Assembly: GCA_973895155.1 (NCBI GenBank)
Contig: OZ316899.1
Span: forward strand, 4,095,241-4,159,240
Length of the DNA stretch: 64,000 nt
From: Marsupella aquatica
Taxonomy: Eukaryota > Plantae > Marchantiophyta
Direction of reading: 5' to 3'
Positions 2,731-51,006 of the stretch are shown piece after piece. The position numbers and the translations under genes are program-made. Every line of letters starts with the position of its first letter. Position 1 is the stretch's first letter. The notes beneath the pieces are model-generated. The model was given only the letters and a program-made list of their open reading frames with translations. It searched no databases and was not told the DNA's origin.

Positions 2731-4171
2731 AAATTCTCCCAAAAATGGAATATTGAAAAGTGCTTTTTGGAAATTTAGAGAAGGGGTTTTGGAATTTCTA
2801 AAATGAGGTTTTGGAATATTTAGTTTAGAGTTGTGGAATTTTCAGATTAGAATTTTGGTATGAACACAAAGGGCACCTTGTCCATTGAAACTGTCAATTT
2901 TCTCGTTCATCCTATCGAGTGCTCGTTTTATATAGTGCAAATCTTTGTGGAGCTTGTCCTTATTATCGACAGATGCAAAGATGAAGGAATTTAAAATCAA
3001 ATGTGCTAGAGCCCTTTTTATATTGAACTTTTCTTCCATAATATAAATTCCTTGATTTGATGGGTCAACGGTCTAACTATCAAAGATATCGCGGATCTTT
3101 CCGCGTATGACAAGGGACTTTCTATAGAGCCCTTACTTTCTGTAAAATTCTGGATATCTTCCCCCCAAAGCCTGAAACTCCAAGGCCTGGGATACCAACC
3201 GGGGGGCAGGTTCGCTGTCAGATGTTTTTTCGTCAAACACTTTTGACCTTTCACCTTCACCCATTTTAATTTTCACGACCTAGGACGGGCTATGCCTTTC
3301 CAATTCTGATATTCTACGCTCAAGAGTGTCAACTCTCTGAGTGAGGAGCGACAGAGACCAATTCTGTGAATCACTGATCTCTCTCATCACCCCATAGATG
3401 ATTCACAATGTTAACAAAATCTCAAGAGGAAGGCCTCTGGGTCAGAAGCTTGGCCCAAAGGGGGGGACTTCCAGAGCCCAAGGATTAGACAGCCGTCAGA
3501 CAAGGAATCTGCGCTAAGCTGAGCTCTATTGGGTAACTTGATAATCGTGTCCTCCAAAGTTTTAGGAAAGAGGTGACACAAAAAAACGAGATACATCAGA
3601 GCTGAAGATACCATGCAAGTGATTGACAAAGTGCACACGATTTTGAAAAGGAAAACTTTTCATTATTCACAAAAATATTGAGGTTGGAAGAGGCATCCCT
3701 CAAACCAATGCCATCGATGCCAAAACTGAATTCAAAATCTGTTGGGAAGATGACTCCAACCAAACTACCCAAGGAAGCTGGCACCGAGATGTGGGTAAGA
3801 CAATCGCTGAGGAATAGAAGGACCTCAACGCTCTACGCGAGACCAGCGCAAAAAGAGATTTGGGTTTAGGGTTGATCTACAATCTCACAGTTGCAAGAGG
3901 CATTCCTCCAACCCTCGTCTAGGTTCCTAAGCACCTTTCAGATGAGAAAATCTCCTTTACCAGCTTAAAGTAGAAACAAAAGTGAGCCAACACAATCTAA
4001 ATTTTCCGGAGTCGAATATCTACGCGAGACTCGTGTTATCCTCAAAATGCTTCAAAAACTTAAGACTCTCCCAAATGGCTTCAAATCTTAATCGTTCCAC
4101 GAGGATGGCATCCACTCATCCGAGTTTGGAGTGGATTTGCGGCAGTCAAGGAATGCTTCCTTTGCCCAAGC

Positions 4172-4618
4172 TCAATGGTCCATCAGAGCCCCCTGCTGCT
4201 TCTTTCCCTTCCCATAGTAGACATTGACGTTTTCCTTCATGCATCTTTTGTTCACAGTCTCCCTGGGCATCTTTCCGGCTTTCTTCGCACCCGATGCCTC
4301 CTGCCCCTCCATACGCGACACGGAATTTCCTCGGCTAATCTTTGAATCGTCCATTTTTGATTCTCCAGGTGTCTTACAATCGGGAAAGCCACAGGTATCT
4401 CCATCAAGTTCTGACAAGAAAAACCTTTTACATTGAGCACACTCTCTTAAAAAAGATCCTTCTTTGTCAGAATTGCAATTACGGTCAAACCCATCCGCAG
4501 GCGTGTAAATCTTGGATGACCTCCTTGGGGCGTTCCCCTCCTTTGAGCTATGAGGCGGGGACACCTCTGTTGAGTTGTTGGTCACGCCAAGGTCCTTGGA
4601 CGTCACTAGTGGATTCAT
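4172..4618 (-). CDS. Hypothetical 148-aa cargo protein with Cys cluster (CAQC..CGFPDC), possible Zn ribbon
   Basis: Open ORF downstream of the transposase with a CxxC-x13-CxxxxC arrangement; no family recognised. Confidence 0.35.
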   Translation of the reverse strand: MNPLVTSKDLGVTNNSTEVSPPHSSKEGNAPRRSSKIYTPADGFDRNCNSDKEGSFLRECAQCKRFFLSELDGDTCGFPDCKTPGESKMDDSKISRGNSVSRMEGQEASGAKKAGKMPRETVNKRCMKENVNVYYGKGKKQQGALMDH

Positions 4619-4869
4619 CGAGAGAACTCAAGAGATCCTCTCAAAATCAGATTAAGAAATATGAAAACTAACACAAATCAAATGACGACAGAAACTAACA
4701 TCAACAATAGATTGAAAGTGAATCAGAAACCACAGAATGGGAAAAGAGAGTGAGAAGTTCCCTATTTGGACAAGACCAAGAAACGGCCATGTCGCTTTCA
4801 GTAGACCCTAGCCTAGATACCAGAGCAAGGCCGCTCTACACGACCCTCGTGCAGATCCAAATGGTCTAC

Positions 4870-7800
4870 CTAAACCTTCCTTGGTAAGGCAAAAGGAGGA
4901 GGCCCTACGCGAGCCTCGTGCAGAAACAAACACTCCGTTAAGAAGTTCTCGGAAATGTATGCATTCACGCTTTCAAGAATATGAACTGGAACTTTCACTT
5001 TACCCTTTGCCTTTGAATTCCAGCCATTGATTGTAGACATTGCGAGGAGCCAGTCGTGTCGGATTGTAGGACTTTGGTAATTTGGATCAACTTCCCAGGA
5101 CTGTTTAGAATTGAAGCAATCCCGATATCGTTCAGAGTCTGGGACATACGACTTTTGATGGATAGGTCTCCACCATTCCACCTCAAACTCCCCAGCATGA
5201 GCATCATCCGGAACCCGCACAACGCGATCCATGGCTCTTCCTAGCCAGAATCGAAGGGGAGTTGTTTGTTCGAATTCATCTATTGGACGAAGAATAACAA
5301 ACGTATCCTTTTTAATATCCTCAAGTGGGGAGAATCTTGATCTTTCTCGCTCCGAGCGATGGCCAACAAATATTGTCTGTCTCTCATTTTTGATCTTCCT
5401 GAAGTTCACGCTCAAGGCTGCTCATGACATCATTGACAGAGCCAATGTTATTCTCAGAAATCCCAACCTCAGCTCGATATCTGGTTCCATGGTTAGTTCT
5501 TGGCCAAAACCCATCGAGTAGCAGATAGTCCCTCTCCAGATTAGGCGCAGAGCATAGGGAACCTTTGAAGACCCTGATGACATTTTCCCAATACTCAATT
5601 TCCGGGGATCAAAAATGATATCCCTCTGATGTGACATCTTTCCAGGCGGCTCTTAGCCATGAAACGTAATGAACGAGGTATTCGAGAATATCACTCGCTC
5701 GCTTATGAGTCGACTCCATTTGTTTTGAAAGAGGATTTCCGGAGGGAAACACAGAGTCCTTTCCAGTAGTTTTCCAAGTGGAGTGACCTTTTGCAGGTAG
5801 CCATGGCAAATCAATTTTCTCCCGATATTGATAAACAGGTGTATTTTCTTTCATTGAAAACAAGAACTGCACAGGGGCTGACTGACCTTGGATCTTCTTC
5901 ACATAAGAAGAAACATAAGCTTTGTATCCGGTAACCTCCCGGATGAATCTTGGGACTGGATGCTTCTTCTCACACTCCCAAACTTCAGCCATCAAACTAA
6001 AGAAAGTGTTAACTCACGATTATAAATCCGAATTCCTACTCGTGAAAAGAATGCGTCAACGTCCTCATGAGTATGACCAACCATCAGGAAGGAGAGGGTA
6101 ACGGACTCAAACACTCCTCAAAGAACAAGCTCACTACAATATGCGATCACGGTTTGATTCTTATTGTCCTTCCCTGAATTGTCAAGTTGGAGGTGCAAAT
6201 GGCGTGGAAGTGGTCGAAAAGAATCGGAGGACGAGGGTTCCACGCGAGGCTCACGCGGAGCTTCATTTTCAAGTCCTTTAAAATGGTCGAAATCCACATT
6301 CTTCCTTTCTAGATAGCCAATCTCAAAAGCCCGACGATCTAAAAGCGCAACAAAAATAGGATTAGACACGTCTGTGCTCCACAGCGATAAGTCTCCAGTC
6401 TTATCCCCAGAGAATGACTCAAGATCCCTGAACAACTTTGAAAGAGATGAGACTGTGAAATCAGGATCACTCGCCCACAATCCACCAAGTGCAAAATGGG
6501 CATAGATTCTGGGATCCCGTCCATGCGTGAGCATTCCAGTCAACGTCATCGGTAACGAAATTGATTACCCGCTTGACTTTTAAGAGTTGAAGTCATTTTT
6601 GGTATCCCTGTTTTGGCTTGATCCATTTTGTCATGAATCACCGAGAGATACTTCTCTGGCTCTTGATCTGCTGCCAGTTTGGCTGCATAATACATGCTTT
6701 GCCAGGACTGTTGTTCCAGCATGTGACGTTCTCTTTTGGCCTTGATTTCAAGAACAACATCTTGTCTCTTCTTGCCTCGAAGAGTCTCTTTGATTGTAGT
6801 ACAAAGATCGCATTTTGAAAAATTGCTTCGATCAGGAAACTGAAAATTGGGAAACTTTTTCTCGAATATCTTGTAGAAAGTAGCGATGACAGGAGAAGAA
6901 GCTCCAAGATTCTTGTTAAGCTCGCAAACCTCTTCATAAACATCTTTCCTCTCGTAGCTTATGGGAACCCTATACACGACCTCCTGCTTTCCAGACTCTC
7001 CAATTTTATGGAGATGAGGCATAGGCTTTGCACATTTCTGGAATACACTTCGTATAGACTCCACAAACAGCGTGACGTAGTCTTTGGTTTTCATTGATCC
7101 TTGGTTGCCATCAACGCCAACTTTTGCCCCATTCCGATAGTGACTATAGATTGAATAGAAGGTTCCTCTGGAGAAACCATGGATGGTCCAAAACCCTTCT
7201 TTACAGACATGTGTCCCACAAAAAATAATCATCCCGGCCTCTATAGTTTCCGTATCCCTCCCGTGTAGATGGTTCAAAACGTACGTCTGTTGATCGGCGT
7301 GAGAGAGACCATAAAATTCATCCCTAATCTGATTGACCACTTCCCACTATTGTCTCCTACAACAATTCTTTGTGCAGCACTCAACCTAGAAGACAACATC
7401 AACAGATTCTCGAGTCTTCTTTCTGTTATGCCTTCTATGAATCTTCTTCCTTTCCTTCTCCTCAGGAGCCTGCGGGTTGCGACATTGATTATTATAGCCT
7501 CGCTTTGGTTTAACATATGATACAATTGCTCGCTCAGGATTCAGGAATTCGTTCTGATCCAATAGATCGCTTAGCAATTGCATTCCAGGCTCGATCTGAG
7601 TTCTCCGCAAAGGCCATTTGATTGTGCAAGGCATTCCCTCAACAAAATAAGGGAACGTCATCTTTGAGATGTTGTTGTCGGCGGCCAGCACTTGTGAATA
7701 TATTGATCCCGACATGATCATCTCCAACTCTCTCATTGTTAATCGATGCTTGAGGGTGCGGATTCGTGATACACCCTCGAGCCAGTAGTGTCTCATCATC

Positions 7801-8289
7801 GTCTCCATAAAGCAAAGCAAACTTCTTGAACCACCTACTTTGATAGCTCAGGTCCTCGCTCAAGAGAACATTGTCCTGACTATGGACAGTGTCTCCCGTG
7901 GCATCTTGCTCCCCAAAACCTGCTTCCCGTTCTAGAGGAAGCTCCTCTTGGTTGTCACCTGGATAAATCGGGCGATGGCTTTCCGCAAACCTGACGCTGG
8001 ACCGATCCCACAGAATTACTGAATTTAAGCTTTCACCGACCAGGTCCGCCCCTGCGTTTGGATAAGGTAACTCAGCAAGGTGGAAGAATGCATCCTCAAT
8101 AGAAACACTGATTCTATGCTCGCCAATCAGAATGTTGTGACAAGAGTCCGAGGGAGTAATGCTGAAAACCGTCCCACCCGCAACCGGTTCATCGTTCAAT
8201 AAGAGATTAACTCGATCCCCAAGGGAAAACATATTCTTGACCGATTCGAGGTTAACAGTAACTTTGACACGACTCTCATGTGGACACAA
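4870..8289 (-). pseudogene. Sola-like (DUF7869-type) RNase H-fold DDD/E transposase with N-terminal En/Spm TnpA-like modules
   Basis: Motifs VCKEGFWTIHGFS, FSKCDLC, IHDKMDQAK (D1), LQLDNSGKDNKN (D2) and FLMVGHTHEDVD (read manually at 6055-6090). In-frame TGA at 6118-6120 and frameshifts near 6546, 6000 and 5420. Superfamily label from motif resemblance. Confidence 0.8.
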
Positions 8290-8590
8290 GACGAGAATTA
8301 TTCACCGGCAGGAAAAGACCTGGTTAACCAGAATAAAACATGCACGTTAGTATCCATCAACACGAGGCTCGTGTAGAATTATTAATGCATACAGCTAGTG
8401 GAAGGAAACACAAGGAGGTTCGATGGCTAGGCGAGCCTCGTGTAGAGCATCAGCTTAGGTCTAAACATCTCCCAAAAGTAACCGAATAACACAATCATAT
8501 GCATTTATGACAAAAAGTCCCACAAGAAGTAAGGAAAGGACCCACTATTATTCGATGCTTCACTCTAAGAGAGAAGGAAAGTCCAACAAG

Positions 8591-8669
8591 GTACAAATTC
8601 CAACAGGGTAAAAGGTCCACCAGTGTACAAATTCCATTAGGGTACAAATTCCAACAGGGTACAAATCCC
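8591..8669 (+). repeat. Four copies of gtacaaat(t/c)cc upstream of the transposase
   Basis: Copies at 8591, 8625, 8642 and 8659. Confidence 0.8.
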
Positions 8670-8951
8670 CAATCCATGTAATATCACATTAAAGAACCAC
8701 CCAACTGATAAATTGTGTTACAATTGAAGTCCAATTCATCAAGACCAAGACATAACCCATGTCAGGACCCTCAATCGTCCTCAATTAAGAAGAAATGAAG
8801 TCTAATTCTAAAATTAGGGCAGTTATGGAAGAAATGAGGTCTAATTCCTCTTTGAAATCCTAAATATCCTATTACAGTACCCCTATTTAGTAGAACTTTT
8901 GAAAGAAATGAGGTACAAATAATTGTCCTAAAAAAACATTCTCCAAGAGTG

Positions 8952-9011
8952 ACAGGAATGAGACAGTCATAGGAATGAGACAATCACAGGAATGAGACAG
9001 TCACAGGAATG
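8952..9011 (+). repeat. 17-bp tandem repeat x3.5 (acaggaatgagacagtc)
   Basis: Read directly; lies in the divergent intergenic region. Confidence 0.85.
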
Positions 9012-9618
9012 GAATCCCAGAAGGGATGTACCGATTGGGCACCCAGAAGCAGTCCTTGGACTCAAACCCATGCCAAGACCTGTCCTCAGAACCACCCGTG
9101 CCAGAACTTGTCCTCAGAACCATTCACGTCTGGCGAGAGAATGACTAGAGAATCAGGACGACTAATCGATAAATACCATTCCCAGATAGAAATCCCGAAT
9201 ATAATGGACAAAAATGATAGGGTGGCCGCTCTCCTAGATCGTCGTGTGGTCCGATTTTCCGATATTTTGGTGGCGCAATTAATCATGTCAGATAATGACA
9301 ACAGATATAATGACAAAAGAATAAGCACATATGCTCGAATGTGACAGGCTGATAGCTCTGCATGATTGTCGTCTGGTAAGATTCATCAATATTTTTGGCA
9401 GTGCTCTTAATGATGTCTTCACGCTTCACGCTGGCCCATTTTCACGCTGGCCCATTCCTCGTGTCAGGTATATATTTCAAGGAGATTCGCTCATTCACTC
9501 ATTCCTTCATCCTTGCCCTCTCGCTCATTCTCCGCCCTTTCACTCATTCGTCTCTCCCTCTGAGTTCTGCTCAATTCCGTCCATATTTTGCAAATTCTCA
9601 CACGTGCGAAGAGGTTTC

Positions 9619-10450
9619 ATGGCGAATCTATCCGAATCGGAGGTCCAGGAGATGTCGGTCGCAGCTTTCACCAGAGTTGAAGGTATTTCCACACGACAAT
9701 CGTGTAGATCTTTAGTTTTTCTTTTCGTTGTTTGTTTTTATTTCAAATTTCAGCGGTTCCTTCCACACGAGTCTCATGTAGACATTATCCTATTAAATTT
9801 ATTTGTGTTCTGCGATACCTAGTACTAAGTTTTCTACACGAGACTCGTGTAGATGAGCTCCAATAATATGCCGTGAATGCACAGATCATGCTTGAAGGTA
9901 ACCCCCAGTCTTTTTCTCCGAATCAGTTTTAGACGTTTTTTATCTCTAGCTTAACGCGACTCTCGTGTAGATCCCGGACGATCCTCATCCCATCAGTTCT
10001 TCCGTATGAAAATGCGTTGGAGTAAATATCATTTCCATTTGCTTTCACGTGACTCTTGTGTAGAGCATGTTACTCACCTGAGGCTCATTTGTTACCTTGA
10101 AGGCCAAATCGACAATGCCTTGAAATATTTGAAGTCGATCAAAGATAAACATGAGAAGGAGTCCCAAATGACTGAGGATGTCCTCGAGGAACTTGAGACC
10201 CTACGAGAAATTGTGAAGGAGAAAGATGAAGAGATTTGTTCGATTAGAAAGGATTATGCTGGAAGATATTTTCGAGCTCGCGGAACCATCTTCAGACATG
10301 TCAGGAGTTGTGCCTAGTGATGAAGGAGGCCGCCAAGCTTGATGAGCTCCGTGAGAGTCAGATACAGATGCTCACAAAGAAGCTGATTATCATGACGGCC
10401 CAGGAGGAAGGACACCTCCAGACTATCAAAAGGCTGAAGAAGGAAGCAGC
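9619..10450 (+). pseudogene. Probable spliced small coiled-coil cargo gene
   Basis: ATG at 9619 (MANLSESEVQEMS..), donor-like gaag|gtattt at 9683 and gaag|gtaacc at 9898, and a Glu/Lys-rich heptad ORF at 10080-10317. Exon structure uncertain. Confidence 0.4.
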
Positions 10451-12239
10451 CTAGAAGACATTTCCCTAGAACTCATCTGTCAAGACTTAGTACTAGACGA
10501 GTTGTTTAGTTGGAGATCGAGGCACCCAGATGAATATGTGCCCCAACTTTAGAAGATGGTAGTCGAGCGGGAAAAGTCCATTTTGGTCGAATGAGTTGTT
10601 TTCTGGATGGATTGTCCATTTTTGTGAATAATAAAATCTCGGCATTTGTTTTGACATCTTGGACTCTGTTCTAAATCTTCCGTATTGGTTCTTTCCTAGG
10701 ATTCCCGTATGTTTGTTTCAGCCACCCGTGCCTACCGCAGCCGCTAAGTCGAAGCATTGTTAGCCACCAAAATCCAATCGTCAATTCATGGTCTTTTGAA
10801 ATGCGTCTGGAGGGTGACGCTTGGAGGTGTTGGTTGCGGGGGATCATTATTGCCAAGCCCAAGAGGTTTTGGAAGTACTTGGGTGTGCTTGCCGATTGTA
10901 GGATTTCAAAAGCACCAGAGCACCAGAAGGGGAAGGTCTTTCTGATAGTGACAGTGGAGGACCGCGTTAATTCTGGATATAGAGAGTTCTCTCTTCCCGT
11001 TGAACAATATTGTTGCGCACATTGTCTTGAGCCAAATGATGCGACAATGAACATAACGTCCTTTAGGATTTTTTGATCCATCCACTCATCGTTTCATGGA
11101 TCCAGATAATATTCTCACTGCTGAGGATATTGTTTCAGGGCTGGGAAGGGTTAGTTTTTTGTTCTTCAAAGATTATTAATCTCACCTTTCTGCAACCAGG
11201 CATGTTGTTTGTCATGTCTCTATCTTTACCGGAAGATGAACTTCGGCAGGAGATCAAGATCATTCTGGAAATTGCTTTCCCAGATCCAGTTGACGAGGAA
11301 AGGATTAAATGTTAGGTTGCGATCCATCCTGTAGTGAAGGCCTTCAATTTGAATCAGAAAAGGCACGGACGTCATGGTGGTGGCCCAAATCTCAAAGCAA
11401 GCAAAGTTGTACAGGAACCTGGATCGTCGTCGAGTTCAGATTCAGGATCATCAAGTTCACAGGGTACATCAGATGAACCGAGCATTGTTCCCAGTGACTC
11501 TTTGAGTCCTGAGTTGGTTGGAACAGAGGAGATCTTTGAAGATGAGATCCAAGCCGTGGATGAAGAACTCGCGGAAGTGGGAGGCTCAGAGGAAAAGGAC
11601 TCTGAGACTGAGATGGAGGTGCAGAAGAAAAAGAAAAGAAAGCGAATGGAAGAAGACGCTCCTTCCAAGAAGAAGAGATTGTCTTCAAAGATTGCTCTTC
11701 CAGAGAAGGTTGGGAAAGCTAATGTCCCTCAGGCAAAAATCTGCACTAGCTCTACTGAGGTGAAAGGGCCACAGATCGCAAAGTCCAAACAACCACAGAA
11801 GAAGATTAAAGTGGCCGAAATGCCAGAACAGAAGAAGGCTGTCAGGAAGAAGACTCAAAAGAAGCAGGCAGTTGTGGAAGAGATAGCAAAACCCGTATCA
11901 AAAGGTGTCGTTAAGAAGGATTTGTCTCGTAAGGCTTCCACTGCAACACCTTCTGCTGTCGTGAAACAGAAGGTGCCCTCAAAATCTCAAAAGGTCAATA
12001 CTCAAGTGCAAGACGTATCCACAGACCATGGGGGGACAAGATCAGAGAAGTCCAAGCGTGGAAGGGGCCGCAAAAGAGAGACTGAGGGAATGGAAGAGGC
12101 ACCGGAAACTGGTGTCCCAATCCCAAAGAAACAACGTAAGAAAGTGGAGATGATTGAGATGGATGTCGTGGATGACATGGGAGAGATGAATGCTGACTCG
12201 AGTTCTAAAGTAATCGTTGATCGAGCCAGACTTGAGAGG

Positions 12240-12720
12240 GCAGAAAAGACTTTGCAGCAAAACCGATGCTGGTATTCTTTTGGGCTGTCAAAATTTTTCC
12301 TCGTTCCTTTGATGAATATCTATCCTCCGCCGGCAAAAATGAATGAGCGGTTACTCAATGAAGACCATGTCAACCATCTTGTTCAGTTGATGATTTCAAA
12401 TGCCGATCAGGAACCTTTGCCTGCAGATCTGGTGCCTTACAAGATGATTAATGGTGTTTACAGTCTTATCAATCTTTCCGTCAAAGATTTTGATTCTAAA
12501 CAATTATCCGAGTATCAATATTTTGCAATAAGTGGTCAACACTCGATTATGGCCGCAAGGAAAATCATTCGGAGTTCTCGAACACAGCCATCTCTGGTTG
12601 AAACTGCCAACCTCCTCAAATTCCATCGTGCAAGAATTCTCAAGGGGTCGACACCTGTTAAGGTGTTGGTTGAGATTTCACATGCAAACAACTTGCAAGC
12701 TGAAGCACGTCGTTTCTCGT
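12240..12720 (+). other. ParB/Srx-like domain (element 1)
   Basis: NERLLNEDHVNHLVQLM...YFAISGQHSIMAARK resembles the ParB/DGQHR core (SGQH at 12531-12542); the Arg of GxxR is Ser. Confidence 0.6.
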
Positions 12721-12821
12721 CACCATTCATCGACCAGGTCAGGCATGCAAGAATGCAAAATTCGGAAATGAATCGACCAGTGCGGCCAGTGCCGTCAGGG
12801 CAAAAATCCCAGGAATTCCAG

Positions 12822-12957
12822 GTCCGTTCTTGTTGACACCATAATTTCTTTTGTGGTCCACACGAGCCTCGTGTAGAATCCGAGGCTTGGCCCTAAGATA
12901 CCTTCTCCAAAGGTTTGGTTTACTGTGTTGTTCTTACCATTTGTTGTTGGGTTTCAG
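12822..12957 (+). other. GT-AG intron (136 bp, phase 0) containing one palindrome copy
   Basis: cag|GTccgt ... tttcAG|aat; splicing fuses ORF 11334 in frame with ORF 12925. Confidence 0.8.
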
Positions 12958-13646
12958 AATTACGAAGGGTTGGCCAAAGTCACACTGAAAGTGAGTAGCA
13001 TCAACAAATACAATTGGATCCTTTGTGCATCGGAGAGCCTCTATAAGTTGTGGATGTCGGTCTGCAATAGTTGGTTGTCCGGTAGTTTACCTGACAACAA
13101 TGGAGAGATGACTGGGAAGAAGAGGGAAGCAAAGCAGCTTACTGGGACGACATTCAGGGTATTTGAGGGGGCGCAAGAATCTGACATTACCTCTATCTTG
13201 AATAAAGTTCAATCGGGAGAGGTTCTCTTGATGAAGAGAAGACATGCAAGGACATATATACCTTCAAGGTTCGATCTTGCCATGAAAGCCAAGTATACTG
13301 AAAAGTTGAAAGGTGCAATCTTGTGGTTCTACCGCAAGACCTATGAAAGTGTTTTCAATGTTGGGCCGTTTGGTCGGACGTGGTCCGCGAGTTTAATTTC
13401 ACGAATGAAGAATTGGATCGATGTTGCTCAATGGTCGACAATGCTTATTTCAAGAGTTTAGTCAATGTCTCTGCAAAATCCGATATGCCGGAACCTTTGA
13501 AGAATAGGTTACAGAATATTTACCAAAAGAAATTTGGGGGAACTGTCCGCGAGAGAATGGATCCATATCGAATATTTTACTCTGGGAATCTTCTTGCTTC
13601 CGCGGAGCCTCCTTTTGATTCAACGAGTTGTAGGGAGAGGATTAAT

Positions 13647-14310
13647 ATGTCACTTGCTATTGTCGATATGACACACTCAATTCAAAATACTTGGACACAA
13701 TCGGAGCTGCTGAATTTCTTGAAGATTGTCGTGAATGTCCCCGCCAACGACTTGGTGACTGTCGTGTTTTTTGTGCACCCAGGTCTCTTGCTGGCCAGAA
13801 TTATTGAAGCTATCACTGATCTACCTTCCAGTTATAATGCTCATCTGGAGTATGGAAGCTATTGGAAGAGTGCGAAAGAAGTCCGCTCATCGTATTTCAT
13901 GCCGGGTATTATTGAGTCCATTGTTTTTCTTGGAGTTTCCCAGGAACGAGAACCGGATTGGGAAAAATATTTCAGAGGGTTTCAAGGTCATTTCTTGGCG
14001 GAATCCATGGATCAACTTGAACTATCAAGACCAGCCAAAGAAGATTATGCTGGCCTTTCCAAGGAAGAGGTTGCAGCAAAGCGAAAATCCGTTCTTGGAG
14101 ATCGCTTGTATAGACTCATTCCTTTTCGGACCCCCGGTGGCAGAACATTTACATCAAACATTAAGCCCAGCAGAATTATCAAGGCAATCATTCTTTGATT
14201 TTCCAAGAAGGAGGAAATTGTGTTGGACTTTTTTACTGGTGGGCAAGTTTTAAAGAATGCCCTTCTTCTGGAAAGGGAATGTTTCTCTTTTTGTTCGGAA
14301 AGGGGGGATG
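13647..14310 (+). other. Beta-class amino-methyltransferase-like domain (element 1)
   Basis: KPSRIIKAIIL*FSKKEEIVLDFFTGGQVLKNALLLERECFSF matches N6_N4_Mtase motifs X and I. The predicted motif IV position reads SLAIVDMTH instead of DPPY/SPPY. Confidence 0.65.
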
Positions 14311-14989
14311 TGATGGACCTCACGGCTTATGCGGAGAATCTCAAGTCGTTGGAGGGTGTCACACAATTCGCGAAAATCCTTATGGAAACTTCCAGGAGGG
14401 GAGGGCAGCTCAACACAAAACTTGAAGGGAGTGGCACAAAGGAAGGGAGGCACTATCATGTCACTGGAACTGTCTCCCATCAAGACGATAACAGATTTTC
14501 TGATCCTTGTGTTGGAATGATTAATGATGGGGAACAGATTCGCCGTCCATGGGAATTTGGTGAGGCGCAAAGACCGATCCACCACTTAGTGAGTTCCGAA
14601 GGACCTCTTGTGGAGGAAGAACACAATGACGGTGGGATACCTCTATCTCTATGCGAGCCTCGTGTGGGGTCGTTTGGCGAGGTGGACTCAATTGTAAATG
14701 ATATTGCACCGGTTGTGTCTGAGGATCCTTCCAATTACCTTCGGGTTGTCACTGGAGTTCAAGAGGCCGTTAACATCGTCAATCCATCCCCTCCCCACAC
14801 TTGGGCAGAAAATCAGGGTCCATGCGAGGTCGAGCCCGTCATCGGACATGTCGATAATGTTGCCATGGAACTTGCAGTGGAGCCTGCGAATGAGGCAGGT
14901 GCCAATCCACTCTTTCCCACTTCTCTCAACCTGAACGATGATGTGGCGATAGACTTTTGCCTCAACCCTCACTTTGATCAAGATTTAGT

Positions 14990-15611
14990 TTTGTCGACAA
15001 TTAGTGGATGCGTAATAACTCATCGCGAGATGGCATGTCTAGGTCCCGAGCGATGGATAACTTCTGAAATTTTGAATGCTTATTTTGGTCTGATTGCTTC
15101 GAGAGCAGAATCTGCGGGTACCGACCTTCCGTAGGTTCATATTTTTGATACTTGGTTCTATTCAGAACTTGCTCGAGGTGGATATAAGTATGACGATGTT
15201 CAAACTTAGACCTCAAAGTTGGAGTACTTTTTAACTGATGTAGAGATGGTCATGGTCCCTATTCATGAGGGACATAACCATTGGGCACTGGTCGTCATCG
15301 ACATGGGTCTTAGGAAACTGGACTATTTGGATTCTTTGCACGGAGATAACCTTGAAGTTCTTGAGAACCTAGCAAGATATCTAGATGATGAAGCCATGTT
15401 CAGAACTCATAAGGAACTGAATGCTTTGTCATGGCCGAGAAACTATTGTAAAGACATCCCTCTTCAAACCGATGACTACAACTGCGGAGTGTTTGTCATG
15501 AAATTTGCCGATTACCGGAGTAGGGAGAAGCCTATTGATTTCAAAGCCGAGGACATGGATGCTGAAAGGAGGAAAATTGTTCTAAGCCTTTATCGTCACC
15601 ATTTGAGTTAG
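14990..15611 (+). pseudogene. Ulp1/SENP-like C48 cysteine protease domain
   Basis: WITSEILNAYF, VPIHEGHNHWALVVID, YLDSL and QTDDYNCGVF give an intact His-Asp-Cys triad and oxyanion Gln; two in-frame TAGs upstream. Confidence 0.92.
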
Positions 15612-15807
15612 ATCTACGCGATTCTCGTGTGGAATAGGTTATCGTCAGATTTCCATACGCTGCAATGCATCGTAATTGATGTTACGCTCTTGCATTGACT
15701 TTATGATATTGATGTTCATTTATTGTTTCGTCACTCTGCAGATATTGTAACATACGATATGGCAACTATTATACAAAACACCATTCCTCGTAAACTGCTC
15801 GTACTTG

Positions 15808-18029
15808 TGTCACGCGATTGACATGGGTCTTAACACCAAAGACGTCACTATGGGTGCCAAAACCATCTCCTTGTACCTGAGGATCACGAAGGGATGTTGT
15901 GAAGGCCGGTAAACACCAATTTATGCCCTTAACACCAGACTATCATAGCAAAGCTCTATCACACATCACCCAAGCTCAATCCCAAGGAACCAAGGTTGGG
16001 GATCAGATCTGCGCTCATGATAGTTCTGGTGAGAAGGGGTCTTCATATCGGGCCCGTACACACAGGGCCTAGCGCTACGGTGCGCATAGGTCTATACGTA
16101 TGCTTACTGTCATAGGTATGTTTCTATTCCGCCGCCGGAATGTACCCATAAACCAGTGACTCCTGACTGATTCCCAGCTTAGGGACTTCTAAGCCATTGC
16201 CCCACCACTCTGCCATTCCACTCTCAGCAATCAGAGCTGTGACAGCCCTCACCCAACCCACTTCAATGCACCCGGTACACCTCTCAGTGGCGCTGCTAGT
16301 CTCATCATACACTCAGATTGCCTCACACACACACACATCCATGAGAGAAATGAGGCCTGAAAGGAAAACTCAATTGGATTCAAAGATGTGCACAATAGTT
16401 CACTGAGAACACTTGATCCGAACACTAGGCCCGAAGGCTGTCTCCTCCAGATTGCGACGTGCTTGCCCTGCAAGCCCCGTGCTTGCCATGCAAGCTCAAT
16501 CCTGAACTCAACCTCCTTCACTGCACTTCATTCTTGGGGGCACATACAGATCTCACACCTCCAATTCAGAACGTCAAGTTACGCATGCATAGTTGACTCG
16601 ACTTCAAAGCTGGTACCAGGCCTAACGGCGATCTACCCCAGACTGCAATGAGGCCCGGCCTCACGCTTGCCCTGCAAGCTCAGCTCTGGCCATAGATCCC
16701 TTAGTGCTCTCCACCAGACAAAGGCCGGGACTCCCCATGGGTCACGTAGCCTTGCCAGACTGAACTGTAAATGCTCCTCCTGCTGCCCCTTACTCAGTAC
16801 CTCAGCCTCCCTAATGTGCCCACCGCAAATCGAATTGAAATCCTCCCCACAGTTTATAATCACCAATACATCACCTATCACCAAGGCTCTGTATCGGGGG
16901 AAAAGAACCCAGTTGTGCTGCCCACTAGAAAGAGCCACAATCCAGCTCGCAAACCTAGCAACCCGTTGTTGTGAAGCTTGGCTGATTACTCCCTGAGTAA
17001 TAGCACAACCAAGCTCTCCCCAACACGCAGCGTCCAAGTCCAGCCTTGCTTGCACAGAGCTCCTCCCCGCTGCTCAGTCTAAGTGAGATCACACAACTGA
17101 AGTCCCCCCCCATCTCTACCGGGGGGGGCTGCTCTATATACTCTCATACTGAGCCCAAATGGCTGGGTACTACGCTGCTGGAGCCCCATCCCAGCCCTAA
17201 CAGAGCCGCCACTATCTCTAACTACTGAACCCTAACTCGCCGCTTTATTTATATCTCGAATTGGCTATGTACTTCGGATTTGGCCCTCCTCCATGGTTTT
17301 CGCGAGCTTACGCCTCCTCTCCCGATTTCTGTATTCAACCATTTGCTGCGTGGATAGCAGCGTTGGAAGCGGCTTGAGCTCCTCTTTCCAATGAGGTCAA
17401 TTATAGCCGATTTGGTCAAATACACAGAGAGTTATGCCCCCGCAACCGAGAGAGGGTACTCACTGCTGCGCTAACCCGAGTTACATAGCTAACCCGAGTT
17501 CGGCTAACCTAGCTATCCTATCTAACCCGAGTAGAGCTAACCCGTGGTCTCGGGTTAGGCCGCTACCCGCTATCCGCTAACCTAGCCTAAGCTGAGCCCG
17601 AACCCGAGCTTACCTATGCTAACCTGAGCCCGAGTTTAGGCTAACCCGAGTTCAATCTAATCCGAACCTAGGTTAAGCCTAAGCTGAAGCTGTGCTGACC
17701 TGAGCTAAGCTGAAGCCGTGCTCACCTGAGCTAAGCTGAAGCCGTGCTTACCTGAGCTAAGCTGAAGCCGTGCTCACATAAGCTAAGCCGTGGTCGAGCT
17801 TGGGTTAACCCGAAACTGAAGCCGAATCCGCTAATTCCGGCCATAAGTTAACCCGTCACACTAATCAGGCCGTATCTCTCTTAATACACCTCCGTTTCCC
17901 GAGTGTTTTATATCGATTTTACTCGCCTTGACCAGATCTTTCCAATGCTCTTTACAGATCCGGATTTGGTGACATATTGAAAGAAATATGGTCGTCGACC
18001 ACCCGCGACATAGTTTTTATTTCCCTACT
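15808..18029 (+). mobile_element. Solo LTR, family A copy 1 (2.2 kb)
   Basis: Begins TGTCAC and ends ccctact (ccctaaca in copy 2). Flanks cttg/ctta are a possible 4-bp TSD with one mismatch. Homologous over its length to 20612-34371 (minus) and 48871-51010. Confidence 0.85.
17679..17782 (+). repeat. 26-bp minisatellite x4 (ctaagctgaagccgtgctcacctgag) within a ctaacccgag-rich tract
   Basis: Units at 17679, 17705, 17731 and 17757. Confidence 0.9.
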
Positions 18030-32302: not shown

Positions 32303-32955
32303 AATAGAACATGGGACAACGGAAACGGATAGCAAACAACAGCCACAGACACGGACACCGGACACGGATAGCGGACATGGACAACGGACATGGACACCAT
32401 ACAAGGATAGCAGATAGTGGACAACAGCCACAGATAATGGCTACGGATAGCGAACACGGACAACGGACACGGACATTGGACACGGACAGCGACCACGGAT
32501 AGCAGACAATAGACAGTGGACACGAATAGCAACTTAGCCCAAGGCCACGGGTTAGCTATGTAACTCAGGTTAGCCTAGTAGTTTATACCCCTTCTCAATT
32601 GCGGGGGCATAACTTTCTCTATATTTGCCCAAATTGGAAAGAGGATCTCAAGCCGCTTCCAACGTTGCTATCCACATGGCAGATGGTTGAATAGAGAAAT
32701 CATGAGAGGAGGTGCAAGCTCGCAAAAACTGTGAAGGAGGACCAAATCTGAAATACATAGTCAATTTGAGATAGAAATAAAGCTACGAGTTAGGGTTCAG
32801 TAGTTAGAGATAGTGACGACTCTGTTAGGGCTGGGATGGGGGTCCAATATCCACCCATTTGGGCTCAATATGAGAGTATATAGAGCAGCCCCCTGGTAGA
32901 GGCAAGGGGGGGGGACTTCACTTGTGTGATCTCAAGTAAACTAAGCAGTAGGGAG

Positions 32956-33299
32956 GAGGTATTTACAAAAGACAGCAAAATAGGAAACATGAGTTAATAA
33001 AAAAAACTGGTAACAGGAAAATGGGCGAGAACAAAATTTGAATTTTTTTTGCAATTTTTTTTTGCAATTTTTTTTTTGGTCGACCAGTTTCTTTTGCTAG
33101 CGCTCGGCCCTACTAATAGTAGCGTCCAAAGCTAGCCAAAAATGTTGCATAGTTAATTTTTTCTAAAAATGATATGTTTTAGGAGACATTTTTAAATCGT
33201 CATTTGTACTGGTAACAATGATTTTTTGCTAGTAACAACATATTAAAAACAAGAAAAAAAGTTCTTATTTACCTGTTTCCTGTCTCCGTCACTATACCC
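32956..33299. mobile_element. MITE of the GGGG-terminal Mutator-like family (no TSD; adjacent ~270-bp deletion of LTR A)
   Basis: Ends gaggtatttacaaa / tataccc are homologous to MITE 51963-52293 in inverted orientation; internal tagcgc-tcg-gcccta at 33098. Confidence 0.75.
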
Positions 33300-34699
33300 A
33301 TTGAGGGGCAACAGGAGGAGCATTTACAGTTTAGTCTGGCAAGGCTACGTGATCCATGGGGAGTCCTGGCCTTTGTCTGGTAGAGAGCACTAAGGGATTT
33401 ACGGTCAGAGCTAAGCTTGTAGGGCAAGCATGAGGCCAGGCCTCATTGCAGTCTGGGGTAGATCGCCATTAGGCCTGGCACCAGCTTTGAAGTTGAGTCA
33501 ACTGTGCATGTGTAACTTGACATTTTGAAAAGGAGGTGTGAGATCTGTATGTCCCCCAAGAATGAATTGCAATGAAAGAGGTTGAGTTCAGGATTGAGTT
33601 TGCAAGGCAAGTACGGGGTTGGTTTGAGTCCAATCTGCCATTGCAATCTAGAGTGAGCTGGGCTTAGGTTTGGGATTGAGCTTGCATGGCAAGCACGGGA
33701 TTGAGCAAGCATGGCAAGCACGTCACAATCTGGAGTAGACACCCTTTGGGCCTATTGTTTGGATCAAGTGTTCTCAATGAACTATTGTGCACATCTTTGA
33801 ATCTAATTGAGTTTTCCTCTCAGACCTCATTAATTTCTCTCCTAGATGTGTGTGTGTGAGGCAATTTGAGTGTATGATGGGACTAGTAGCGCCACTAAGA
33901 GGTGTACCACATGCATTGAAGTGGGTTGGGTGAGGGCTGTCATAGCTCTGATTGCTGAAAGTGGAATGGCAAAGTAGTGGAGCAATGGCTTAGAAGTCAC
34001 TAAGCCAGGAATCAGTACTCCTGGTTTATGGGTACATTCCAGCGGCAAAATAGAAACATACCTATGGCAGTAAGCATACGTATAGACATATGCGCACCGT
34101 AGCGCTAGGCTCTGTGTGTATGGGACCGATATGAAGGCCCCTTTTCACCAGAACTGTCATGAGCGCAGGATCTGATCCCAAACCTTGGTTCCTTGGGATT
34201 GAGCTTGGGTGATGTGTGATAGAGTCTTGCTATGATAGTCTGGCATTAAGGGCATAAACTGGTGTTTACCAGCCTTCATAGCATCCCTTTGTGATCCTTA
34301 GGTACCAGGAGATGGTTTTGGCACCCAATAGTGATGTTTTCGGTGTTAAGACCCAAGTCAATTGCGTGACAATAAACAACTAAAGAAGACTCAATTTCTT
34401 CATGAAGATGCTCCCTTGTAAGCATTATAGTTGCAATTAGACTCTATGTTGTACTCTGAGGATGCAAAGCAATCCTCTACCCAATATATGTGATTCTCCC
34501 TATCAATCCAATTGGCCCAATCCTCTTTGAGTCTCTTGCGCTTGGAGATGGTCATGCACTGATTCTACTTGGTTTGGTCAGGAGCTTTGGCTAAACCCTA
34601 AACCCTCAACCTTAGTATCAGAAAGCACAACAGAAGGAGTTTGCACCAACATGGAGGATGAGCCAACTGATGGCTCACCAAGAACTCTCATTCTTGCCC

Positions 34700-39431: not shown

Positions 39432-40410
39432 TGTGGTAAGTGTTTTAGATGAAACTTATCTAAAATGTATCTTAGAAACTCAAATTCGTTCCCGTAGGGA
39501 ATAAAGGAAATCAATTTATGATGGTATTAAGGTCTTTGAGATCTTTAGGAGTCTCTTTCCTTACACAACTACTATGTATCACTCAAAATATTTATGATCA
39601 ATCGTTTTAATATGGAAACTCTCAGACTATCGCTCCTTCTCAAGAGAAGTTTGATTTTCGCTCCATTCCTAAATTCCTTATACTCAACAGAGATCGGCTT
39701 TACATTAGGGATTTCACTACAATTCTCTAAACTCTAGATTTCAGAACTTCACTCATATTTTTCCATACAAAACCAAAGAAATATTTTCTCAAAATGTATT
39801 CATTCATTCCAAGGTTTGCAAGAAATGCACGAGGAAATCATGAATAACAATGGAATTTGGGTGGTGCATTTTCTCATTTCTGCGATTCTTCCTCCTAAAG
39901 CCCAACTTGGCATGAGGAAAAGACCCATACTGGTCACAAATCGTTTCCAGAGAAAATGACAAGGCAATTTTGCATGGGAGTTCAATTGTAATACTCCCTC
40001 ACAGATCAAAGAGATCTGAAAAGGTTACTTAACTACCTAAAAACTAACTATTGATGGAAGATCTGAAGAGGTGAGTAGTTCTAACTACTTTCCTAAGCTA
40101 AGATTCCTAATGATGGCTAAACTAGTTTAGCTAAGCTAAATTCTATCTAATGAGCTCAATTTAGGAAAAGGGATAGAAAATGGTTTAAGAAAAGTTGAAT
40201 CAAAATCCAACTTAAAACGCCTGAATGATTCTTTCGATGTAAAAGCAATTGTCGATTAAAAAGGATCCTTCAATGTGAAAGCAGTTTTAGAGCTTTAACT
40301 CCTTCATCTTCTGTAAATAACTTCATTTGTGGCTTAAAAGGTTTCAAAAGTTTTGAAAAATATAAATTGAATACTCCTTTAGAACACTTCCTCAGAAAAG
40401 GCTTTCCACA
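39432..40410 (-). repeat. Athila-like 3' LTR
   Basis: TG..CA, preceded on the minus strand by the PPT at 40411-40425. Confidence 0.95.
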
Positions 40411-43059: not shown

Positions 43060-44038
43060 TGTGGTAAGTGTTTTAGATGAAACTTATCTAAAATGTATCT
43101 TAGAAACTCAAATTCGTTCCCGTAGGGAATAAAGGAAATCAATTTATGATGGTATTAAGGTCTTTGAGATCTTTAGGAGTCTCTTTCCTTACACAACTAC
43201 TATGTATCACTCAAAATATTTATGATCAATCGTTTTAATATGGAAACTCTCAGACTATCGCTCCTTCTCAATAGAAGTTTGATTTTCGCTCCATTCCTAA
43301 ATTCCTTATACTCAACAGAGATCGGCTTTACATTAGGGATTTCACTACAATTCTCTAAACTCTAGATTTCAGAACTTCACTCATATTTTTCCATACAAAA
43401 CCAAAGAAATGTTTTCTCAAAATGTATTCATTCATTCCAAGGTTTGCAAGAAATGCACGAGGAAATCATGAATAACAATGGAATTTGGGTGGTGCATTTT
43501 CTCATTTCTGTGATTCTTCCTCCTAAAGCCCAACTTGGCATGAGGAAAAGACCCATACTGGTCACAAATCGTTTCCAGAGAAAATGACAAGGCAATTTTG
43601 CATGGGAGTTCAATTGTAATACTCCCTCACAGATCAAAGAGATCTGAAAAGGTTACTTAACTACCTAAAAACTAACTATTGATGGAAGATCTGAAGAGGT
43701 GAGTAGTTCTAACTACTTTCCTAAGCTAAGATTCCTAATGATGGCTAAACTAGTTTAGCTAAGCTAAATTCTATCTAATGAGCTCAATTTAGGAAAAGGG
43801 ATAGAAAATGGTTTAAGAAAAGTTGAATCAAAATCCAACTTAAAACGCCTGAACGATTCTTTCGATGTAAAAGCAATTGTCGATTAAAAAGGATCCTTCA
43901 ATGTGAAAGCAGTTTTAGAGCTTTAACTCCTTCATCTTCTGTAAATAACTTCATTTGTGGCTTAAAAGGTTTCAAAAGTTTTGAAAAATATAAATTGAAT
44001 ACTCCTTTAGAACACTTCCTCAGAAAAGGCTTTCCACA
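43060..44038 (-). repeat. Athila-like 5' LTR
   Basis: Near-identical to 39432-40410. Confidence 0.95.
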
Positions 44039-49496: not shown

Positions 49497-49823
49497 GAGG
49501 GTTTTCACCGTGACAGCAAATAGATTTACTGTTATGAGCAAAAAAAATCCTGTTTCGAGCAAACATTTACTATTACGAGCAAACTAGACAATCTAAAAAT
49601 GTGTCATTAAAAGTCACAATTTTCAAAATAATTCAAAATACAACAATTTTTTGCTAGTGTAAGGCAATACCACTACTAGCTCTGGGCGCTAGCCAAAAAA
49701 TATTGACTCACAAAAAAAATTTAATATTTTTTTCCCCAAAAACAATTCCCCAAAAAATTTCAAAACTTTTACCACCCGTTTGTTGTTACAAGTAACTGTT
49801 TGCTGTCACGATGGTTATGCCCC
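49497..49823. mobile_element. MITE (327 bp) of the Mutator-like family
   Basis: 8-bp TSD tcttgctg/tcctgttg (2 transitions); ends match the TIRs of 47550-59489; internal tagctc-tgg-gcgcta. Confidence 0.85.
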
Positions 49824-50569: not shown

Positions 50570-51006
50570 AGTCGCTATCTGTGTCTGTTGTCCATTGTTT
50601 GCTATCCGTGTTTGCTATCCATGTCTGTTGTCCATGTCCGCTATTCGTGTCCGTTGTCCATGTCCACTATCCGTGTCCGCTATCCGTAGCCATTATCCGT
50701 GGCCATTGTCCGCTATCCGCTATCCGTGTCCGGTGTCCGTGTCCGCTATCCGTGGCCATTGTTTGCTATCCGTTATCCGTGTCCGGTGTCCGTGTTTGCT
50801 ATCTGTGGCCGTTGTCCGTGTCCGCTATCCGTGGCCATTGACCGCTATCCGTGTTCGGTGTCCGTGTCCGTGGCCATTGTTCGCTATCCGTGTCCGGTGT
50901 CCGTGTCTGGTGTCCGTGTCCGGTGTCCGTGTTTGCTATCCGTGGCCATTGTCTATGTCCGCTATCTGTGGCCGTTGTCCGCAATCCGTGTTTGTTGTCC
51001 GTGTCC
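50570..51006 (+). repeat. Compound simple repeat (ctatccg / tgtccg / tggccat units)
   Basis: Read directly; related tracts at 20800-20950 and 32310-32530 in copy 2. Confidence 0.9.

Follow-up and report, generated by a model that had tools for sequence, protein, structure and literature searches.

In the 64,000-nt stretch of Marsupella aquatica DNA that was analysed (hereafter, the window), a decayed 12-kb DNA transposon with two divergent genes, both broken, carries 16 copies of a palindrome, and each of nine related plant loci carries a palindrome of its own. These ten lineages have differing palindromes in the same kinds of places, namely promoters, a gene gap, coding linkers and gene ends. 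Judging from this pattern, we tentatively propose, with a confidence a little short of even, that the palindromes are the cognate sites of a two-fold symmetric DNA-binding protein encoded by the element, the likeliest binder being its accessory protein, which is predicted to contain a ParB/sulfiredoxin (Srx)-like domain. The transposon, here called element 1, and its parts are located as follows (positions in the window).

3832 to 15633, no strand: element 1, minimum span, given by the outermost palindrome copies (every copy inside, none outside)
4172 to 8289, minus strand: transposase-like gene, DUF7869 family (Pfam DUF7869), broken
11334 to 15611, plus strand: accessory gene, broken, with a low-complexity N terminus, a predicted ParB/Srx-fold domain, a methylase-like domain and a Ulp1 protease
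12201 to 12833, plus strand: predicted ParB/sulfiredoxin-fold domain (AF2 model, Foldseek, 71 homologues)
13347 to 14400 (approximate), plus strand: beta-class DNA-methylase-like region, of which the AdoMet-binding part alone is recognisable
15219 to 15611, plus strand: Ulp1/peptidase C48 catalytic domain (Pfam score 86.4 bits, cutoff 20.7)

The C-terminal part of the transposase, compared with a single-exon relative from Calypogeia, shows two frame changes and three in-frame stops, and the accessory gene, compared with continuous Calypogeia ORFs, shows at least one frame change and at least three in-frame stops. Since both genes are broken, any selection would have acted on the family and not on the window copy, which is dead, so that its palindrome sites are relics. 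Terminal inverted repeats and a target-site duplication of element 1 were searched for and not found; the related locus L007 was also searched for termini, and its arrays swamp the search. No ParB-like gene was found elsewhere in the window, and no ATPase family that could represent a ParA-type partner was found among the ORFs of element 1. A second palindrome of the same habit occurs in a non-coding block of the window, where neither kind of gene is detectable and no coding remnants were found.

The repeat had been described in a sequence-only reading of this DNA as a 19-bp palindrome interrupted by three nucleotides. This 19-mer (the reverse complement of the right arm, N3 and the arm) is in fact enriched: with 3 mismatches allowed it was found 12 times (0.06 expected), always within 4020 to 15632. 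The actual unit, however, is a 21-bp palindrome with a 10-1-10 layout. One copy, at 9833 to 9853, is perfect (TCTACACGAGACTCGTGTAGA) and served as the reference, a copy being defined by at most 6 mismatches to it in the 20 arm positions. With this definition, 16 copies were counted across 3832 to 15633, which bears out the earlier estimate of about 16 over 12 kb. None has an assigned strand, and they are listed here with their mismatches to the reference.

3832 to 3852: 6 mismatches, the left arm alone convincing; past the 3' end of the transposase gene
4019 to 4039: 4 mismatches; past the 3' end of the transposase gene
4835 to 4855: 2 mismatches; inside the transposase gene span, in its 3' part
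4904 to 4924: 3 mismatches; codes for HEARVG in the transposase frame
6239 to 6259: 6 mismatches; codes for EPRVE, in a length-variable transposase linker
8264 to 8284: 5 mismatches; codes for CPHESRV, where the transposase ORF begins
8357 to 8377: 1 mismatch; immediately upstream of the transposase ORF
8426 to 8446: 3 mismatches; 5' of the transposase ORF and 69 bp away from the 8357 copy
9688 to 9708: 3 mismatches; intergenic cluster
9762 to 9782: 2 mismatches; intergenic cluster
9833 to 9853: 0 mismatches (reference); intergenic cluster
9951 to 9971: 4 mismatches; intergenic cluster
10044 to 10064: 6 mismatches; intergenic cluster
12857 to 12877: 1 mismatch; in the gap (intron or internal spacer) directly 3' of the ParB-domain exon
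14648 to 14668: 4 mismatches; codes for CEPRVG, within an accessory-protein linker that is not conserved
15613 to 15633: 3 mismatches; begins 2 nt 3' of the last stop codon

The placement of the copies agrees largely with what had been read from the letters: the two clusters are present (three copies in 8264 to 8446, five in 9688 to 10064), the copy just past the last stop starts at 15613, 2 nt after it, and all four of the reported peptides (CPHESRV, EPRVE, HEARVG and CEPRVG) occur in the ORF translations. The copy said to sit in an intron, at 12858, does lie in the gap after the ParB exon, but this gap may be either an intron or an internal spacer.

Enrichment over background had been set beforehand as a test of the palindrome. 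Against 200 dinucleotide shuffles of element 1 alone, 12 copies with at most 4 mismatches were observed and 0.0 expected; at up to 6 mismatches the figures are 17 and 0.21, the 17th match being probably due to chance, and for half-sites they are 19 and 0.49. Of the right arm, TCGTGTAG, the window contains 9 occurrences where 0.67 would be expected, and eight of the nine lie within 4836 to 12876; the remaining 52 kb of the window holds no match at up to 4 mismatches, two at up to 6 and no half-sites. Chance or composition as the cause of the copies is thus rejected by shuffling, whether of the whole window or of element 1 by itself. No known RNA families were found in the window.

Copies in element 1 are 69 to 3450 bp apart, a spacing to which slippage as an origin is not applicable. 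Around them, no target-site-like duplications were found and the flanks are not conserved, which rules out inserted mini-elements. The earlier statement that the copies are not tandem and not explained by slippage holds for the window copy, but not for the relatives L005, L006 and L007, in which the unit forms tandem arrays, repeated every 26 to 36 bp; array growth by slippage does occur in the family. The deviations from the perfect copy consist of 38 transitions and 15 transversions. It had been claimed that many deviations in the right arm are transitions at CG, which is partly right: transitions do dominate, but only 5 of the 22 right-arm deviations fall on the CG of the arm. Moreover, the idea that all variable arm positions are decayed CG dinucleotides of a CG-richer ancestor is unsupported, since one of the positions that it requires is an invariant A in 16 of 16 copies. 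The centres of the half-sites lie about one helical turn apart, a spacing that would suit dimers on one face of the DNA.

The comparison was extended to nine related plant loci, L001 plus five reached via the ParB-like protein and three via the transposase, which stem from the liverworts Calypogeia and Riccia and from further contigs. All nine have their own, different palindrome, with about zero copies expected in each: 20 copies were counted in L002, 14 in L003, 13 in L004, 53 in L005, 21 in L006, 30 in L007, 17 in L008 and 8 in L009, and 14 half-sites of a decayed palindrome in L001. Different palindromes coexist even within one genome, as in Riccia (L002, L003 and L008/L009) and in Calypogeia (L001 and L007). 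Shared among the loci are instead the classes of features at which the palindromes lie: they occur in the intergenic region between the divergent genes, in the gap that follows the ParB exon, close to gene ends and in variable coding linkers. In particular, the gap after the ParB exon contains palindromes in seven loci (the window, L001, L002, L004, L005, L006 and L007), divergent intergenic arrays are present in the window, L001, L005, L007 and L008, and the site just past the last stop of element 1 is matched in L001 by a half-site at the corresponding position. Furthermore, the sister copies L008 and L009 of Riccia, which are about 80% identical, have four of seven aligned sites at orthologous positions. 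Positional conservation in sister elements, proposed in the sequence-only reading as a check, was therefore found, with the same feature classes kept and the palindrome sequence differing by lineage. Together with the enrichment, it supports the view put forward there of a selected homodimer site; binding and dimerisation are what we infer from the sequences.

These data can be weighed against the possibility that the palindromes are sites of a host transcription factor, gathered to drive the two divergent genes. Such an origin would explain why copies cluster between the divergent genes and ahead of ORF starts, but copies also lie in coding linkers, after stops and past gene ends, and at the 4-mismatch threshold none is present in the 52 kb of the window outside the element. 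Relatives from the same genome, moreover, differ in their palindrome, so that a switch of host factor would be needed in each lineage; a single host factor would hardly account for two or three palindromes within one genome, and we hold this explanation to be very improbable. An element-encoded, dimeric binder that co-evolves with its sites fits the data well, whereas a host factor or chance fits them poorly.

It could also be hypothesized that the two-fold symmetry itself is what is kept, as a hairpin or cruciform in the DNA or a hairpin in the transcript, or that the units are spread and homogenised by copying, in both cases without a dedicated sequence-specific protein. Symmetric, complementary double changes in the arms are in excess in L002 (7 against 2.5 expected), L008 (18 against 13.7) and L009 (12 against 7.3), one orthologous site of L008 and L009 differs by a symmetric change in both arms, and the tandem arrays of L005, L006 and L007 would be in agreement with such an origin. 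However, no arm covariation was found in the window element and in L003 to L007, the window copies are asymmetric at one mirrored arm position, and the arms are near constant over 12 to 53 copies per element, a constancy that symmetry alone does not need. A 10-bp stem closed by a loop of 1 to 4 nt is a weak structure, and neither target-site duplications nor conserved flanks single the copies out as inserted mini-elements. We consider this explanation improbable.

The element-encoded reader that we favour as the putative binder is the ParB-like accessory protein, with the transposase as its main rival. An exhaustive protein search found 71 homologues of the ParB/Srx domain, while word-indexed protein searches, run with the 500-aa ORF or a transposase piece as query, were blank. 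In the alignment of the domain (A1), G-Q-H-S is near-invariant, together with several Arg and Asn residues. The AF2 model has a mean pLDDT of 89, and the top 39 Foldseek matches in the PDB are all Noc, ParB, sulfiredoxin, PadC, KorB, SbnI or Atu1540, the probability being near 1 for the best match, with modest E values (from 2e-3) and low TM scores (0.3 to 0.58). The model thus assigns to the domain the alpha-beta fold of ParB/Srx, in which the conserved residues would be those of the pocket. The earlier label of a ParB-containing protein is backed by this confident model, the best structural matches being almost without exception ParB, Noc, sulfiredoxin or KorB, but not by any sequence profile: the ParB families of Pfam and NCBIfam gave no match at E values up to 10, PDB sequence and profile searches with the domain were blank, and DndB matched weakly (E 0.04) in 2 of 41 domain members. 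The AF2 model ends after the helices of the N-domain, the next coding segment has no profile match, and neither a helix-turn-helix nor another DNA-reading module was identified in the accessory protein.

Downstream, the accessory gene joins the predicted ParB/Srx fold to a methylase-like domain of bacterial type. A profile built from the ORFs of 14 relatives (A2) matched M.RsrI in the PDB at an E value of 1.1e-5, in the AdoMet-binding region, and the Pfam N6_N4_Mtase profile matched three relatives at about 2e-4 and a fourth at 7e-3, over positions ~135 to 215 of 221 and with scores of 17 to 22 bits, all under the cutoff of 26.7; its positions 1 to 130 were never matched in the relatives. The strand expected to bear the catalytic motif ends in D followed by a non-proline residue in all relatives, and a motif scan of the region, which carries little weight, gave no conserved candidate; the N4 enzymes of Marchantia, by contrast, have the TSPPY motif. 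Among the fetched relatives, the Ulp1 domain is found only in L001.

The transposase-like protein exceeds the Pfam DUF7869 cutoff of 26 bits both in the window (44.4 bits) and in L005 (129.6 bits). It has 101 homologues, dozens of them in Riccia sorocarpa, with D, N, E and D columns that are invariant or near-invariant. Its structure model has a pLDDT of 61 and the Foldseek matches (TnsB, IstA, integrases, RNase H) are not significant, for which reason a fold-based classification was dropped.

That the transposase itself binds the palindromes, as cis sites that recruit or pair many dimers across the element with promoter control as a secondary effect, would follow the model of the subterminal repeats of Ac, Hermes and piggyBac. 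Palindromes occur in every locus reached through the transposase that has enough DNA, and copies lie near both gene ends. In addition, a sea-urchin DUF7869 locus has an array of palindromic units without any ParB-like gene. On the other hand, most copies are central or in the gap of the accessory gene rather than terminal, L007 has no copy past the 3' end of its transposase gene, and L002, L003 and L004, which form a biased sample as they were found through the ParB gene, combine this gene and palindromes with no transposase detected in up to 10 kb on each side. We regard binding by the transposase as rather unlikely, even though piggyBac offers a precedent, its 19-bp palindromic internal repeat being recognised by the cysteine-rich domain of the transposase as a dimer (PMC7351741). 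Both piggyBac and element 1 are eukaryotic DNA transposons with an internal palindrome of about 19 to 21 bp that is read (putatively, in element 1) by a dimer of an element protein, but piggyBac has one or two copies, within terminal repeats, and a transposase of another family.

The preference for the accessory protein is in turn weakened by the lack of sequence-profile matches to its ParB/Srx domain and of an identified DNA-reading module, by the sea-urchin array and by the palindrome of the non-coding block of the window, in which neither gene is detectable. Moreover, a single binder of fixed specificity does not predict the symmetric arm variants seen within single Riccia elements. It also counts against this preference that, where ParB domains are fused to methylases, they are reported to act as non-specific nicking nucleases or as NTPases and not to read sites, a non-specific nicking nuclease being the reported activity of the ParB domain in the bacterial and phage fusions of the Bce_0392 type (PMC5512222); in chlorophytes and chytrids, a ParB-type HTH is fused to Dam-like methylases (PMC4738411). 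Element 1 has in common with the ParB-methylase fusions the order of a ParB/Srx domain followed by an N6/N4-type DNA methylase on a mobile element, but only the AdoMet-binding part is recognisable in it and a Ulp1 protease is added. We know of no described link between these fusion proteins and dispersed palindromes.

Plasmid ParB-family proteins bind dispersed or arrayed palindromes, and the systems of this kind (KorB operators on RK2, SopB/sopC on F, ParB/parS, Noc) have palindromes and proteins specific to the replicon, the palindromes measuring 13 to 16 bp and frequently sitting at divergent promoters. Element 1 is similar in that mobile DNA encodes a protein of predicted ParB/Srx fold and bears a dozen or more dispersed or arrayed palindromes; its several specific palindromic sites are those that a parS- or KorB-type system would be expected to have, and the arrays of L005 to L007 resemble a centromere-like repeat array. 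Different from the plasmids, element 1 is eukaryotic and chromosomal, no ParA partner, recognisable helix-turn-helix or ParB profile match was found in it, and it presents G-Q-H-S as its pocket motif and has the domain fused to a methylase-like one and, in the sub-lineage of the window, also to Ulp1.

If the accessory protein is the binder, its occupation of the intergenic arrays and of the gap after the ParB exon could control the promoters of the element, and its occupation of the scattered sites out to both gene ends could mark or assemble the whole element as "self", a role that might be comparable, by analogy, to that of KorB or ParB on plasmids and of TnpA on En/Spm. Site and protein would diverge together, which would give each lineage its private palindrome, and a plasmid-type self-recognition, with parS- or operator-like sites, would be at work in a plant nucleus. 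It is possible, if somewhat doubtful, that liverwort transposons took over a plasmid- or phage-style module (ParB/Srx fused to a catalytically altered methylase-like domain, with private, co-evolving palindromes) for self-recognition and self-regulation in plant chromatin.

Binding-site repeats for element-encoded proteins are known in transposons and are normally confined to the ends; in En/Spm (CACTA), subterminal repeats within a few hundred bp of each end are bound by the accessory TnpA. Element 1 resembles En/Spm as a two-gene plant DNA transposon with many short element-specific motifs, some of which form inverted pairs; in En/Spm, the binder of the motifs is a non-catalytic protein of the element, and the motifs, which overlap with the promoter, function in regulation as well as in assembly. 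However, the copies of element 1 are mostly central, in the gene gap and in coding linkers, and not end-confined, its genes diverge from the centre, its unit is a true palindrome, and Pfam families of CACTA-type transposases or TnpA gave no match at E values up to 10. With episomal animal DNA viruses that have dimeric origin/enhancer-binding proteins of the EBNA1 or E2 type, whose palindromic sites serve regulation and maintenance of the episome, element 1 shares many private palindromes, arrayed and dispersed and some of them coding, for a self-encoded dimer (putative, in element 1); the comparison is one between viruses and a chromosomal plant transposon. Full-text literature searches returned no description of the element family, of this protein architecture in plants, or of the palindromes. 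If the proposal is true, the ten lineages would make up a natural series in which proteins and their sites have co-evolved in pairs, and shifts in DNA-binding specificity could be studied in it.

The right arm of the palindrome that the sequence-only reading described in element 1, the decayed DNA transposon of the window, was found nine times over the whole window, where 0.67 would be expected, and its 8-N3-8 pattern recurred in 12 matches at three or fewer mismatches against 0.06 expected, all of them in 4020-15632. The palindrome itself held, but the proposed 19-bp length did not, as repeat finding gives a longer unit (10-1-10), a perfect copy of which occurs once, at 9833-9853. Taking actual copies rather than a consensus as reference palindromes for the scans, we recovered 16 copies with no more than 6 mismatches to the perfect copy over its 20 arm positions, all in 3832-15633, in agreement with the earlier count of about 16; at 3832, the left arm alone is convincing. 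Furthermore, enrichment over shuffled element sequence was confirmed at both palindrome thresholds, the background being dinucleotide shuffles of the element alone.

Palindrome matches in element 1, in its shuffles and in the other 52 kb of the window
Copies, at most 4 mismatches: element 1, 12; shuffles, 0.0; other 52 kb, 0
Copies, at most 6 mismatches: element 1, 17; shuffles, 0.21; other 52 kb, 2
Half-sites, at most 1 mismatch: element 1, 19; shuffles, 0.49; other 52 kb, 0

As previously described, copies cluster at the divergent promoter region, one lies inside the gap following the first large exon, and another is located 2 nt downstream of the last stop codon; all four peptides encoded by copies threaded through coding sequence were also recovered, and these copies sit in unconserved linkers of variable length. 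No duplications flank the copies in element 1, and the flanks are not conserved either. Departures from the perfect copy comprise 38 transitions and 15 transversions, but only 5 of the 22 right-arm deviations are on the arm's CG, so that the earlier remark on transitions at CG is only partly right. One mirrored position is asymmetric, with G on the left in 9 of 16 window copies and C on the right in 2 of 16. The divergent intergenic region also holds, between its two palindrome clusters, a pair of short tandem arrays whose period is 17 bp (8578-8681 and 8952-9011).

Genes of element 1
Minus strand: transposase-like gene, Pfam DUF7869 family, recognized by the Pfam profile
Plus strand: accessory gene, in four parts

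The window sequence is eukaryotic and rich in repeats, with a CpG observed/expected ratio of 0.55. DUF7869 transposase relatives conserve D/N and E/D columns in common, and the predicted model was too weak for classification of the family by fold. The accessory protein has an N terminus rich in lysine and serine, followed by a conserved domain with 71 homologues, which none of the sequence profiles searched recognizes and whose model (pLDDT 89) gives structural matches almost all to ParB, Noc, sulfiredoxin, PadC, KorB and SbnI. The methylase-like region shows homology to beta-class DNA methylases over their AdoMet-binding part (profile versus M.RsrI, E 1.1e-5), with subthreshold Pfam matches in four relatives, and the catalytic part of a DNA methylase is not recognizable in the accessory protein or the relatives compared; a Ulp1 protease domain is clear. 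This methylase-like domain (window, about 13347-14400; Calypogeia locus L007:1485-3536, minus strand) is of the broad bacterial N6/N4 type, a likeness, at the level of type, shared with the N4-cytosine methylases reported from Marchantia sperm (bioRxiv 10.1101/2021.02.12.428880). Named homologues occur in Calypogeia fissa and Riccia sorocarpa, both liverworts, and distant relatives of the transposase are present in marine animals; a liverwort or some other bryophyte is therefore the probable host of the window. Compared to the continuous open reading frames of the Calypogeia relatives, both genes are broken: the C-terminal part of the transposase contains two frame changes and three in-frame stops, and the accessory gene at least one frame change and at least three in-frame stops.

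Related loci were fetched through the ParB-like protein (six, L001 to L006) or the transposase (three, L007 to L009), and in each we conducted an unbiased cluster search for imperfect palindromes, followed by a scan with an actual copy and shuffled controls. A private palindrome was found in all nine, with shuffle expectations of 0 to 0.13, the half-sites of L001 being counted without a shuffle control.

Palindromes of the related loci
L002: AAGTAAGGCC-N4-GGCCTTACTT, 20 copies
L003: ACCTCACGC-N4-GCGTGAGGT, 14 copies
L004: AGGCTCGAAC-N4-GTTCGAGCCT, 13 copies
L005: GGATCGAGA-N3-TCTCGATCC, 53 copies
L006: TCGCAACGC-N-GCGTTGTGA, 21 copies
L007: GCCTCGATAC-N-GTATCGAGGC, 30 copies
L008 and L009: variants of GCTTCGCGAC-GC-ATCGCGAAGC, 17 and 8 copies
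L001: decayed ACCTCCCGA...TCGGGAGGT, 14 half-sites

The divergent order of transposase and accessory gene around a central spacer is common to the window, L001, L005, L007 and L008, and this spacer, where palindrome arrays are found, represents a shared class of position. A second class is the gap directly after the exon holding the ParB/sulfiredoxin-fold domain, with palindromes in the window, L001, L002, L004, L005 (nine copies), L006 and L007 (six copies); a third is the site just past the last stop codon, seen in the window and L001, and a fourth comprises copies near or beyond gene ends. In addition to these shared classes, positional conservation was observed between L008 and L009, sister copies of about 80% identity, where 4 of 7 aligned sites are orthologous. 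Three Riccia loci (L002, L008 and L009) contain at least two symmetric palindrome variants within a single element, and at the orthologous site L008:12535/L009:12380 both arms have changed, in a complementary way, between the sister copies. That two-fold symmetry or structure as such is what is maintained appears to us improbable.

Chance, composition and simple slippage all fit poorly with different palindromes held in the same places by related elements of one genome.

Because the palindromes differ between related elements of one genome, yet occupy the same places, as expected of an element-encoded binder co-diverging with its sites, sequence comparison supports such a binder, and with it the earlier proposal of selected sites for a homodimer. 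The element would thus encode a two-fold symmetric DNA binder, and binder and sites would diverge together. Host factors binding the palindromes fit this distribution poorly, and we consider them very improbable.

Plasmid proteins of the ParB/sulfiredoxin family bind private palindromes, dispersed or arrayed, often at divergent promoters. The accessory protein is the putative binder, to which we give slightly less than an even chance: its predicted ParB/sulfiredoxin fold speaks for it, as do the densest palindrome arrays, which flank or lie within its gene, and its methylase-like domain could be a DNA-reading module. L002 to L004 carry the accessory gene and palindromes with no detectable transposase, a sample that is biased, since it was the ParB gene that led to these loci. 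Binding by the transposase, which we regard as rather unlikely, has a precedent in piggyBac, where a transposase domain reads a 19-bp palindrome as a dimer (PMC7351741), and methylase-fused ParB domains are reported as non-specific nickases or NTPases (PMC5512222). Also in its favor, a DUF7869 locus of Strongylocentrotus purpuratus, with no ParB-like gene, has a 36-bp tandem array (L010:14655-15604) about 3 kb downstream of the DUF7869 gene, its unit containing the palindrome TGGTATAA-N3-TTATACCA.

The En/Spm elements, whose subterminal repeats are bound by TnpA, are the closest plant precedent, KorB, ParB and SopB with their palindromic sites the closest mechanistic analogues, and bacterial ParB-methylase the closest protein architecture to the accessory protein; feature by feature, membership is at best partial in each case. 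Literature searches returned no description of the element 1 family or its palindromes. Judged by sequence, the family may be a variant of the known kind of system in which an element-encoded protein acts with cognate repeated sites; only tentatively do we suggest, for the accessory protein as binder, a plasmid-type ParB-site module at work in a plant transposon.

Another dispersed palindrome, TAGCGC-N3-GCGCTA (up to 9-3-9), is unrelated to that of element 1 and gave 18 matches at two or fewer mismatches over the whole window, where 0.5 would be expected. Of these, 15 fall in 47894-59240, a noncoding block of about 12 kb that is located within another element's relic transposase gene and has no detectable ParB-like, methylase-like or DUF7869 remnants. 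A second, distantly related DUF7869 transposase relic (37908-64000, plus strand, running beyond the window edge) shows 27 to 59% amino acid identity to element 1 and to pieces of L005, is interrupted by three large insertions and has no accompanying ParB-like gene within the window. Nested in it, a pair of 300-bp direct repeats (39432-39731 and 43060-43359), with 100% identity and a spacing of 3.6 kb, looks like the long terminal repeats of a very young retroelement. Another repeat family has three copies, 86 to 98% identical, at 15851-17496 (adjoining element 1 on the right), 32314-34327 (inverted) and 48871-50941, with weak matches to the TAGCGC palindrome inside; the first two enclose 17.5-32.3 kb as a long inverted pair and may be the ends of one large element. 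At 50563-51005 there is a minisatellite whose 13-bp unit is TCCGYTATCCGTG-like, with an inverted form at 32314-32508, and a dispersed repeat, 72 to 80% identical, occurs to the left of element 1 (821-1486) and inside the second transposase relic (61852-62509).
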